Notes: a model not told the origin generated them from the letters alone. Shown: positions 1-5,424, counted from the stretch's first letter. The stretch: 64,000 nucleotides of DNA from Trichosphaerium sp. ATCC 40318 (GCA_038496445.1 JALMLS010000268.1:124001-188000); one strand, 5' to 3'. A program made the numbers and translations.

Positions 1-552
1 CATACAATAAGTATTTGCAGTTGTTCTGGTATTACTGTTGATGGAGTAAAGGAACTTAAAGATGTTCATGAAATTTTCTTAACTAATCCAAAAGACTCGT
101 GGCTTAAACACCTTGGTAATGTCCATACTATAAATATGTTAGATTGCACTGAGAACACTACTGAAGAAGGTATCAAGGCTCTTAAAAATGTTAAGAAAAT
201 TACTCTATGGCATCCAAAAGACTCATGGCTTAAGCACCTCTGTAATGTCCATACAGTTAAGATTTTACATGATTATAATCGTAGAAAGAAATATGTAACA
301 GATGAAGGAATCAAGTCATTAACAAATGTTAAACTCCTAGTGCTTAGATGTTGTAATATTACAGACTCAAGTTTGAAGCACTTGGTTAATCTTGAGTACC
401 TTGATCTTATCAGTTGTGATGTTATAACAAACGCATGTTTTAAGCACATGAAGTCACTCAAATCCATTTCAATACTTAGTTGCCCAAGATTAAATAAAAA
501 GTATATAAAATCATTGGGCATAACTATTTATAAAGAAGGTAAGTTCCATTGA
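1..552 (+). CDS. Leucine-rich repeat protein, 3' part (probably F-box/LRR family; 5' end outside window)
   Basis: Intronless LRR units such as NVHTINMLDCTENTTEEGIKAL and LTNVKLLVLRCCNITDSSLKHLVNLEYLDL; C-terminal half resembles the 55071-55985 protein (SWLK.L.NVHTV.I ... C.KHMKSLKS); stop at 552. Confidence 0.8.
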   Translation, partial: HTISICSCSGITVDGVKELKDVHEIFLTNPKDSWLKHLGNVHTINMLDCTENTTEEGIKALKNVKKITLWHPKDSWLKHLCNVHTVKILHDYNRRKKYVTDEGIKSLTNVKLLVLRCCNITDSSLKHLVNLEYLDLISCDVITNACFKHMKSLKSISILSCPRLNKKYIKSLGITIYKEGKFH

Positions 553-575
553 AAACATTTGCTTTATTTGGCATT

Positions 576-3500
576 TTAATGAAAGTGGGAGTGTGTACTT
601 GTCTTGTATCTGGAAGAAGGATCTATAACCAACAAAAAATAAATAAAAACTTTAACAAGAAAAAAAAATTCACGTGCCAATCGTGTGCATGCTGAAACTT
701 GACTGCAAATCTGCTGGCTCGGCAGCTACCAAAACTCTAACAAAGTATTTAGATACACGCTAAGGATAAGCTTCAAAGTATTTCGATGATAACATGTGGA
801 GAGCGTGGTTGGTGTAAATCCGCGGATTTTCTATTTTTTACGAACCTGTAAAAGCGTGCTGCATTGTTGAGAACTTTTTGAGGTTCTTTCTCTTTCATAT
901 CAAAGAATTCTTTAATCATATATGCAGTATCTAGTGCTGATAGTACTGCTCTATTTGCGCCTGTACCTTTTGGCCAGAAAGGTTCAATCAAAGCGTCACC
1001 TGAAATACATTTTTAACAAAGAATTACAAATAACTGTGTTAGAGTAACGCACCGACTAGAGATACCGGTAGGCAAGGGTGGATAGCACAACCTTGTTTAG
1101 GATCTTTTACATCAAGCACGAGGAATGGTTGTTTAGCTTGCTTCTTTTTAGAGAAGTCAAACACAGCAACATCATTGAATCCGCCTGTGATAATAAATTA
1201 AAAATAGATTTGCAAAGAGATCACGAACCTTTGCTTGCAAGAGAAAATTTACACGTTTCAGGTAATCCAACGTGAGTAGCAACAACACGGACAAGTTCTT
1301 CTAGTTGAACACGATCAACATTAGCAGAGGATAGCAAGCCTTGATCATCAGCCAAGTTCTCTCTGCAAACGCCTTTTATTGTATAAATAAAAATAAAAAA
1401 TGGACTATTGGCGAACCTCTAGCCAGCAGTGTCGACTTCTTTGCTGTCATTACAAAGTAATGTGTCTCGCCTAAGTAATGCGTGAAAACTTTGGTTTATA
1501 ACCGGGTTTCATACCTCTGTAGTAAACAAGATTTTCAAGTTCAATCTCATACTTATCCTTTAATTCCTTAAAGAACTTTTGATCATAAATGGCAAGAATA
1601 CCTAAGCGCCATAAGGTTGTAGTCTTTGTTGTTTTTCTTTAATAAAAGTCTTACCAAACTCTCTAATATCTTGCTCTGGTTTTGTTTTTGTATTAACAAA
1701 GTTACACGTAATACCAATAGCTCTGCTGCCTTGGAAGATTTTTCTTTCGAAAATAATTATTATTGTGTTCTGTGTTTATGACGCATCTTACCTTTCAAAT
1801 TCAGCGAATTGGGCAACTCTAGAACCTTCTCCATCACCTCCTACTAGCACATTGTACTTAAGAAGTTCAGGAGCAAGGTTTTCAAGCTCAGAGTCAACCT
1901 TTGCTGTCCACATGTAACAGTTCGATTTCTGTTAGAAGAATATTAGCATATATCCAACGAACGATATTTCCACGTGTACCTCTTCATAGGCTGGTTCTCC
2001 TATGCCAACAAGAGAAGTCATATGTAGAATCTTGACCCCAAGAATGAGAGCAATCTTCGTTAGTAAGAGTTGAAGTTGTCTGATCGCGATGTGGTTGATT
2101 CCTCCAGTGCAAAATTTGCCGTAAAAATATTTAGCACCTAATATATTGTAAATATCAGTCGAGTGGATATCGCTTCTCAAAACCATCTGACTTACCAATA
2201 TTTTTGAAATCGCGTATTGAAGAAGGCCATAAGTGAAGTAGATTGTTTCTAGAAAATTTTCTTCTCTTTTCTAACACAACAACATGTGCTCCAAGCATAG
2301 CACTCTCAATAGCTGTACGTAAACCCGCAGGTCCAGCACCTGCTACAAGAACACGACATTTATCCATGTTATTGCACTTGTACTCTGGCTAGAAGAAAAG
2401 TCAGACCACGAGTCAAAAAAAAGCCAAACAAATCAGAAATTAATCAAAAAAAAACTAACGAACCTGCTTCATTCTCTTTGTCAACAAAGTCCATAAAACC
2501 TTCGCTCTTACGTTATCTGATGTTTCGTCTTTAAGAAGCTCGAATAGATTACAATCTTTTTCCGCATTACAGCTTTCTTTCAAAGCGCCGAACGTTCTCA
2601 GACTCTCTTCGAAAGTAGAAGCATCAACAAAAGCTGTAAACAATCGACCTGTTTCGTTATCTGTAGATGCTTTGAAATCTGATTGCTAATCACGTGATTA
2701 ATATTTTTGAGCACGTGTAAAGTTACAAAGTAATAATAATGACAAAGTACTTACACGAATATCCTTGCTGAGAATCTCATGGTAACTCTTCAAAAAATCA
2801 AGCTGGCTGATACCTTTTTGTTGACCTTCTTGCTCGGCTACTTGTTTGAAAGCTTTTTCAGTGTGGCGCCTCAATATGAGCTTGGATAGACTTGATCCTA
2901 CGAGCGACTCTTTGAGCTGATAGAATTCGTCCTTATCAAGGACTCCACTGTTATCAATATCAAACCTAAAGAAGAGACTGTGAGTAACAAACGTCTTTTC
3001 GTTTGGAAAAAAAAACAACACGTACTTTTCAAACTCGTGTAGTGCCTCTTCAATTTTTTCAACAGTCCAATCTATTTATCACTATTAGAGGTACGTAAAT
3101 ACTCGCTTGTAGTACCTGGAAACTCTGGGGCTAATAATAACGCTAGATGGCGCGTCTCATTATCGTAAATATCTTTATACGCATGTAGAAACCCTTCCAA
3201 AGAAAGTCTTATAGAAATAAGCATTTTGAATGTGTACTTTAAAGTTCAACACTTACGATCCTGTTTTTACATCAAGCCCTGCTTTCTTATAGTGGTAATC
3301 GGTTAGCTTCTCCAAGAGACAATCAGATACACCAGGAACAAGCCTTCTAAGTAATCTTTTAAACTCATTACACTCAAGTGTATCAGATTTATCAGCATCA
3401 GCTTCTTTAAAAATAGTTATTGCCGAATCAACTTCATCTTCGCTAAGATCTAAATAAAACAAAAATAAAATTAGTCACGTGATCTGGTGAAAGGCAAAAA

Positions 3501-4662
3501 AAGCATTTTCAAGAATCATCAAGTCGGGCAATGAAGAAGCTAAGCTTCAATAATGAGCGCTCGCAGAGTTACTTCTAGATGGATAATATAGATATACAAA
3601 GGGCAGTGCATTGGTTAGTGTTTTTTTTTGTTAAACGTGCTTGAACCTTTGAACTGCTCGTAATACTTTTGTCTCTCAGCCTTTAATGCAGCTTCAGCTG
3701 CTTCTCTTTTTTCTTTCGCTTCTTGCTCAAGTCTTAATTTCTCCTCTTCCTCTTTCTTCTTTTTATTCTGAACAAATAAAAAATTATTTTTGTTGATTGC
3801 TCATTATCTAGTTTTAAAACGAACCTGCTTCTGTAACCTCATATTCTCCCTTTGCTTTAACATTCGTTCTTTATCCTTATCAACTGCTGAGCTTGCAGAG
3901 GAAGTCTAAACAGAAAACGAGTTAATTAAGACTTAACTTCAAAAAAACTCTCCTAACTAATGCATACCTTTTGTGGAGCCGCTGTTGTTGCTTTAGGCGC
4001 AGTCGTTGGTGTCTTACGAGAAGCATTAGATTTATCACCACTTCCATAATCAGCGCCTAGTTTAAAAGTCATCAAAATCGCGTTTTCTACGCCGCAGGGC
4101 CACGTATAAGACATTACCGGTTGATTTTTTAAGTTTTTTTATTATTTCCTCTTCCTCAACATCTTCGATGCAAGTTGCGTTTATTCTTACATGATAACCT
4201 CTAAACAAGCGTTCTACTTGCGTAGAATGGCCTGGATACACGCCCTAAAGGCAAAACTTAGAAAATCGTATTAATCGACTTATTCTGCTGTACTCTTGAT
4301 GATCCTTGTACGCTTTCACCACACCAAGCAATGTATGCTAATTTGTTCTGTCCGTTAATTTCTTGTTGTACCAAAGCGAACTGAATCTTGCTGTCGTCTA
4401 AGCATTCGCATAGTTCTTCAATGCCATCCTCTCCTGACTCCTTTACTTCCAATTTTGATTTCGAACCTTTGGCATAACCGACAATAACACTACAAAACAT
4501 TCGTAAATGCCTCTTATACCTTATTGACGTACAAATTAATACCAGCAGAGGAAGAGACCTCTTTTACCTAAAAACCGCGTTAAAAACGCGCATATCATGT
4601 ATAAAGCAATAGTTACGTACTAGTTTGGCGATTTCTGGATCTGAGAAGTCTACAGTGCTCAT
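576..4662 (-). CDS. ADF-H domain + coiled coil + EF-hands + MICAL-type flavoprotein monooxygenase (multi-exon)
   Basis: ATG at 4662 ([14 protein letters not shown]). ADF-H motifs VIVGY...[19 protein letters not shown]...[12 protein letters not shown]...YHVRINA; EF-hand loops [12 protein letters not shown] and [12 protein letters not shown]; MICAL motifs [76 protein letters not shown]; TAA at 576-578. Exon phases from the ATG into the monooxygenase domain join in frame. Confidence 0.85.
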
Positions 4663-5424
4663 AACAGGAACTACTTACAAAAAAAGTGGATTGACTTGGT
4701 AGTGACCAGTTGCCCCGAGGCCTTCGTATTCAAAGATGCGGAGGTTTTTTAGTTCCTAACAGCTACTGTTTCTTTGAAGCCTTCATGAGACATAACAGAC
4801 ATGTGATTGACACTTTGAAAAATATGTAAAATTCAAAGTTAAGTACTACGGATGATCAACTGAAGATATAGAATTATGTTGTGCAGTTGAGCAGAGCAAT
4901 GACCAAAATCAGCGCATGCTACTACGGTAACCATCCCTCTTTACTTTATTCTGCAAAAAACAAGAACATCTCTTTTTTAAAGTCAAGTTTCACGAGATGA
5001 ATAAACAACAATTTGTTGGCACTTTTGCTCATAATTGATGGAGTTTAGTTTCATTTGGGATGTTGTTAGGAATGCAAACGACCCAAAATCGGGAACATTA
5101 CTCAAAATCCATCTAGAATCAAAAACTCCTAACACCGGCCATCTGAAAGACCATTTCACAATGATGTCATAATCTTACACTAATTGCCAAGAGGTACTGC
5201 GTAAACTCTGATTGGACTTAGAGCCAAAAACAGCATTTATTACAAGGTCCTAAAGAAAACCCTCACACAATACTGAATCAGTATAAAACCCATGTAAAGT
5301 TTGAATACCATTTTTGTCCACATGAACTAGCAAAAAGCTTTGATGCGCTAGTTGGTTGATCGTATTATTAAAATAAAAAAACCTAATAAAGTTGATAAAA
5401 ACATAATTCTCATAGCCCAAAACG

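Follow-up and report, generated by a model that had tools for sequence, protein, structure and literature searches.

Does a MICAL-type monooxygenase (MO) occur outside animals, and can it be joined in a single gene to an actin-binding head and to EF-hands? This question is raised by a locus of Trichosphaerium sp. ATCC 40318, lying on the minus strand of a 64,000 nucleotide (nt) stretch (GCA_038496445.1 JALMLS010000268.1:124001-188000), here called the window. Between positions 4662 and 576 one gene probably encodes an ADF-H domain, a linker with a charged helix, two EF-hand pairs, and a complete MICAL-type MO using flavin adenine dinucleotide (FAD) and nicotinamide adenine dinucleotide phosphate (NADPH), whose functions are inferred. 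Reviews count a single MICAL in Drosophila and three in vertebrates (PMC9982024), and a CH domain is said always to follow the N-terminal MO (PMC4792234). A survey of the LIM superclass reported no MICAL class protein in the non-animal genomes it covered (PMC3305314). In the literature searched, MICALs belong to animals, keep the order MO-CH-LIM and are controlled through autoinhibition and Rab GTPases, and no description was found there of non-animal MICAL-type enzymes, including those of Amoebozoa, or of the domain order ADF-H/EF-hand/MO. An amoeba MICAL-type enzyme would alter this picture.

The enzyme forms about the last 490 residues of the protein. Pfam profile scans and PDB searches were run on single exons or on stop-free pieces of the six-frame translation. 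FAD_binding_3 was matched at 2158-2388 (E 1.5e-6), and four consecutive pieces within 1224-1775 matched Rossman_Mical (PF25413) over profile positions 2-108, two of them above the 27-bit cutoff (35.1 and 28.6 bits). Three motifs are intact, namely GAGPAG of the GxGxxG type (2340-2323, exon 13), GGDG (1841-1830, exon 15), and the 14-residue GD...PFWPxGTG (999-959, exons 20/21). The best solved structure for exon 13 is MICAL3 (6ici, 63.5 bits, ~65% identity), with MICAL1 also matched. Exon 21, which carries the GD motif, matches MICAL chains only (MICAL1 4txi, 30.8 bits); it aligns to MICAL1 residues 393-424 with the Trp of PFWP conserved. The MICAL1/MICAL3 structures that exons 13 and 21 match best also include 8y6k. 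Exon 12, the N-terminal helical region, has its homologue in the corresponding part of a relative (P0002) which itself matches an animal-type first exon (P0004). Because PF25413 is matched and the GD-motif exon finds only MICAL chains, the enzyme half is of MICAL type and not a generic flavoprotein, as the sequence-only reading of this locus had proposed.

Compared with Drosophila Mical and vertebrate MICAL1-3, the enzyme shares the N-terminal helical region, the GxGxxG motif, the KFSRNN-LHLWP stretch, the PF25413 Rossmann insert, and GD...EPFWPxGTG. The architecture around it differs. The enzyme is C-terminal, and little or nothing follows the MO domain, the stop codon lying ~90 codons past the GD motif. 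An ADF-H domain and four EF-hand motifs lie upstream, and the host is not an animal. The bMERB/Rab-binding domain (DUF3585), CH, and LIM are missing, with no Pfam match to any of the three on any exon piece, which bears out the earlier claim that CH and LIM domains are absent. At the level of sequence, then, the domain fits a MICAL-type MO and the protein fails the animal MO-CH-LIM architecture.

Relatives were sought with exon 12 in a whole-library HMMER search, which returned only two matches, no copy of the window protein, and one true relative, P0002. P0001 was discarded as a repeat artefact with 8 stretches of tandem repeat. P0004 (L006), the sequence matched by P0002, was set aside: it is exon 1 of an animal-type MICAL, from a genome rich in microsatellites whose introns are long, and is uninformative on the window architecture. 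The contig of P0002 is L001, and a 69%-identical locus was recovered from four runs in Logan run assemblies (L002-L005). In all five the order is charged coil, LIM (E 5.5e-13), SH3, four canonical EF loops, and MO, an architecture of which no description was found in the literature searched. The L002 locus (1-4061) has few large exons and few introns, and its LIM domain lies upstream of the enzyme. Exons 9-23 of the window gene follow L002 collinearly, each with 35-68% identity. The relative shares the EF-hand pairs, the MO, and a C-terminal ...S[ST]RYK...THFH with the window protein, but carries coil-LIM-SH3 where the latter has ADF-H, and all four of its EF loops are canonical whereas two are degenerate in the window. 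Three further searches added little: the EF region of L002, used in a word search, found only itself, P0003 had no usable match among look-alikes, and the L001 open reading frame against PDB was dominated by SH3 matches with nothing gained on the EF part.

At the N-terminus, Cofilin_ADF was matched with 38.4 bits (cutoff 22.4) on 4261-4563, covering profile positions 18-90, and with 21.7 bits on the adjacent exon piece (4065-4244, positions 90-125). Judged by eye from the translation, exons 1-2 supply the N-terminal strand of the domain. The best PDB matches are drebrin-like 1x67 (E 6e-4) and the Entamoeba coactosin-type 4liz (E 9e-3). These matches support the earlier assignment to the coactosin/drebrin type and place the domain in the drebrin/Abp1/coactosin class; it is not a cofilin. 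The Lys before LAYIAW is presumably the counterpart of coactosin Lys75, which is needed for F-actin binding. The earlier reading had also pointed to the cooperation of animal Mical with cofilin; this synergy cannot be transferred here, as the window ADF-H is drebrin/coactosin-like. Its description as a replacement of the CH domain is an analogy.

Behind the ADF-H domain follows a linker rich in Ala, Thr, Pro, and Ser and then a Lys/Glu/Arg-rich charged helix, neither matching a Pfam family. The helix may be the proposed coiled coil or equally a single helix. No significant similarity links exon 7 to the linker of L001, so this relative does not share the charged helix. An N-terminal ADF-H followed by a charged helical region is also the plan of drebrin/Abp1/coactosin proteins. 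Unlike this class, the window protein has no SH3 tail and continues into the EF-hands and the enzyme.

A canonical EF loop has the 12-residue pattern D-x-D/N-x-D/S/N-G-x-I/L/V-x-x-x-E in a paired helix-loop-helix. In the window, loop 3 (12 residues, 2961-2926) is canonical and loop 1 (12 residues, 3399-3364) nearly so, with Asp instead of Gly at position 6. Two points count against the module: loops 2 and 4 are degenerate, and the Pfam scores of 20-22 bits fall below the cutoffs for both pairs (EF-hand_1/_7 on 3256-3474, E 2e-4; EF-hand on 2701-3075, E 5e-4). Homology argues for it. Pair 1 matches the EF region of L001 (BLASTP E 4e-8), whose EF-hands pass the Pfam cutoffs, pair 2 matches L002 (tblastn E 5e-10), and pair 2 resembles exon 8 (E 7e-4), indicating an internal duplication. 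The two EF-hand regions claimed from the sequence are thus probable EF-hand modules by homology, in which Ca2+ binding seems feasible for loops 1 and 3 alone.

The gene model comprises 23 exons and 902 codons (2709 nt) with the frame open throughout. It begins with an ATG at 4662, four codons downstream of an in-frame stop (4677-4675), and ends with the stop codon at 578-576. RNA evidence consists of assembled spliced contigs from four public runs (X1, X2, X4, X5) of three studies, placed on 400-4900; such contigs cannot show transcript ends or isoform proportions. As they are spliced across the locus they behave as transcript assemblies, and the gene is expressed. Joints in these contigs account for 20 of the 22 introns, 15 as listed joints and five from contig pieces and depth arithmetic, introns 2-4 being derived in the latter way. 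Intron 1 is supported by a 13-letter contig overhang at 4567 equal to the end of exon 1. Where contig cuts were ambiguous they were shifted to GT-AG. Splice support thus covers 21 of the 22 introns proposed for a single in-frame gene (Table 1). All 21 measure 43-109 nt. With these introns and with GTTCGT/GTACGT donors, the genome looks like that of a non-animal protist.

Table 1. Features of the ADF-H/EF-hand/MO locus, in window coordinates.
Feature	Position	Strand	Basis or remarks
ADF-H domain, exons 1-4	4662-4621, 4567-4533, 4489-4294, 4244-4118	minus	Pfam Cofilin_ADF
Linker and charged helix, exons 5-7	4056-3968, 3905-3825, 3767-3647	minus	Translation; contig pieces in X1, X2, X4
Putative intron 7	3450-3646	minus	197 nt, GTTCAA...TTTAG; joins ADF-H half to EF/MO half
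EF-hand pair 1, exons 8-9	3449-3257, 3207-3116	minus	Joints 3207/3257 and 3071/3116
EF-hand pair 2, exons 10-11	3071-3026, 2965-2755	minus	Joints in contigs
MICAL-type FAD monooxygenase, exons 12-23	576-2685	minus	Pfam, PDB; all 11 introns seen as joints (X1, X4, X5)
GC-AG intron 22	623-677	minus	Donor GCACGT; joint 622/678, plus-strand ends CT..GC, in X1, X4, X5
AATAAA poly(A) signal	563-568	minus	8 nt past stop codon; RNA contig depth drops sharply below 550

Intron 7 is the sole intron not seen. The sequence-only reading had placed an intron of about 195 nt at 3452-3646; the boundaries of the putative intron are instead 3450-3646 (Table 1). Several observations weigh against its splicing. 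The joint 3647/3449 is in no contig of the four runs, and at 197 nt the intron is a length outlier. In X1 the EF/MO contig (record 1) has a depth of 77 and the ADF-H contig (record 2) a depth of 16. Record 2 is 668 nt long, which exceeds the sum of its exon pieces (13+35+196+127+89+81+121 = 662) by six, and extends 6 nt beyond the GT donor to 3641; the depth arithmetic agrees with this end (8.61 x 151/16 = 81 positions). All four observations favour two neighbouring genes, with a drebrin/Abp1-like ADF-H/charged-helix protein that would read through the donor to end at TAA 3620-3618, and a separate EF-hand-MO gene beginning downstream.

Nonetheless, two genes are distinctly unlikely, as the contigs support neither of the two mRNAs they would require. 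A stand-alone ADF-H mRNA is not demonstrated, because record 2 ends without reaching any stop codon, 21 nt before the TAA, no run has contig depth in 3450-3640, and no poly(A) hexamer lies within 3450-3646, whereas the real 3' end of the locus has AATAAA. The depth of 15.3 in the X1 bin 3420-3570 equals 77.2 x 30/151 and is accounted for by record 1, from 3449, alone; the other three runs have zero contig depth in this bin. A stand-alone EF/MO mRNA is likewise unsupported, because record 1 begins exactly at the acceptor 3449 without a start codon, exons 8-11 contain no in-frame Met (none over 177 codons of record 1), and no ATG in 3450-3646 could be used for reading into exon 8. The start of record 1 at the acceptor implies that something is spliced on upstream. 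Unlike in X1, the depths of the two halves are similar in X4 (9.2 vs 7.4) and X5 (about 8 vs 11.8).

The junction itself points the same way. Junctions 7/8 and 9/10 are both phase 1, both split a GAT codon preceded by [Q/E]F[K/P], and both lie at the same place before a duplicated EF unit, reading QFK-D-LS and EFP-D-WT, respectively. Where the window gene has QFK-D-LS across the junction, L002 reads QFPDLT uninterrupted in one open reading frame. The exon 8 homologue of L001 and L002, like the first EF pair as a whole, sits in one open reading frame behind the SH3 domain. Taken together, the contig ends, the phases, the junction motif, and the homology to the relative make a transcript fusing exon 7 to exon 8 very likely.

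This fusion may be one of several isoforms, made with a donor at GT 3646 or GC 3640 beside a more abundant EF-MO form that begins in an unseen 5' exon. The two X1 contigs are broken precisely at the borders of exons, a pattern that branch points leave in assembly graphs, and the depth ratio differs between runs. Moreover, the end of record 2 directly precedes GCACGT at 3640-3635, a hexamer identical to the confirmed GC donor of intron 22, and both donors are in frame; intron 7 may therefore have a second in-frame donor. On the other hand, no contig within 400-4900 contains an alternative exon, and the GC donor would give QFKGS-N-LS, a poorer fit to the L002 motif than QFK-D-LS. A mixture of isoforms is rather doubtful.

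Two other candidates within this interval were rejected. A first exon inside 3450-3646 fails as two of the three ATGs are out of phase with exon 8, the third would need an intron of only 29 nt, and RNA depth is lacking at all three. As to a hidden RNA gene behind the length of intron 7, Rfam gave a single match at chance level on 3300-3800, and the fold of the 197 nt is not unusual (z = 0.45).

The C-terminal half of the L002 enzyme retrieved further fragments from soil and marine metagenomes and from Logan assemblies. L007 and L009 share the C-terminal ending of the L002 and window enzymes. In front of the enzyme, L007 has a low-complexity region and L008 a charged coil. Together with the coil-LIM-SH3 relatives, these unrelated N-terminal regions on the same enzyme agree with the idea of an independent build outside animals in the sequence-only reading. 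The sequences outline a small family of protists in which the MICAL-type enzyme stays C-terminal while the heads are exchanged, and the window gene belongs to its EF-hand subgroup. Such a variety of heads is better explained by the swapping of modules than by descent from an animal MO-CH-LIM protein.

In L008, a TARA marine metagenome scaffold, the coil is long and rich in Gln, Lys, Glu, and Arg and runs into the MICAL-type enzyme (3689-4204); a possible membrane anchor, in the form of a hydrophobic stretch, is encoded in an upstream open reading frame (2839-3261). A conserved tail, P-[SK]-[ST]-R-Y-K...H-F-(H), lies directly past the enzyme in L007 (2439-2480), L009 (2336-2374), L002 (4017-4058), and the window (620-579). 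A comparable P-A-T-R-Y stretch presumably occurs in animal MICAL1, where the MO domain nears its end.

What such a protein might do can be proposed by analogy. The splice from 3647 to 3449 would create the fusion protein, in which the ADF-H head would hold the enzyme on the sides of actin filaments and the linker and charged helix would give reach or permit dimerisation. With NADPH and O2, the flavin domain could then oxidise actin, by analogy at Met44 and Met47 of the D-loop, or release hydrogen peroxide (H2O2) locally; either route would weaken filaments. The EF module is placed to gate the enzyme, as it directly adjoins the N-terminal helices of the latter at a distance of ~15 residues. In NOX5, EF-hands regulate an NADPH/FAD oxidase. 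Ca2+ bound to the window module might switch the enzyme in a similar way. It would thereby stand in for the autoinhibition that animal MICALs exert through their C-terminus and that Rab releases, a device the window protein lacks. NOX5/DUOX-type flavoenzymes share the position of an EF-hand module N-terminal to an NADPH/FAD-dependent oxidase, but their fold is unrelated and the window enzyme lacks their membrane haem domain. Actin oxidation and Ca2+ gating are both inferred for the window protein.

The family as a whole qualifies this proposal. Neither L007 nor L008 has EF-hands directly upstream of the enzyme, so the family as a whole does not share Ca2+ control. The two also have no recognised actin-binding domain upstream, which speaks for an alternative in which the fusion is real but the enzyme is a locally targeted NADPH oxidase producing H2O2, or one oxidising other proteins or small molecules. 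MICAL MO domains are described as generating H2O2 through NADPH oxidase activity (PMC10705957). However, the heads that can be recognised are cytoskeleton modules, ADF-H in the window and LIM with SH3 in L002, and exon 13 is ~65% identical to MICAL3. This alternative is accordingly unlikely.

It is possible, if only tentatively, that amoebae possess their own Ca2+-switched, filament-anchored actin methionine oxidase, diversified by swapping actin-related heads on a conserved C-terminal enzyme. If this is true, redox dismantling of actin by MICAL-type enzymes would be older than animals, shifting the origin of the enzyme class to before them, and EF-hands would do the job of Rab-released autoinhibition. 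Within ~900 residues, one compact protein would unite catalysis with the targeting of actin and a possible switch by Ca2+, as parts that can be taken apart. This opens the question of actin methionine oxidation in amoeboid motility or phagocytosis.

Some minor features of the locus remain to be described. Introns 17, 18, and 19 (within 1229-1601, minus strand) share a length of exactly 44 nt. From intron 16 to intron 20 all are phase 1, each splitting a GGx glycine codon. At the 3' end, a leucine-rich-repeat open reading frame on the plus strand (136-552) is convergent with the monooxygenase gene. Only ~10 nt separate the stop of this reading frame, at 552, from the AATAAA at 568-563, such that the two 3' ends almost touch.

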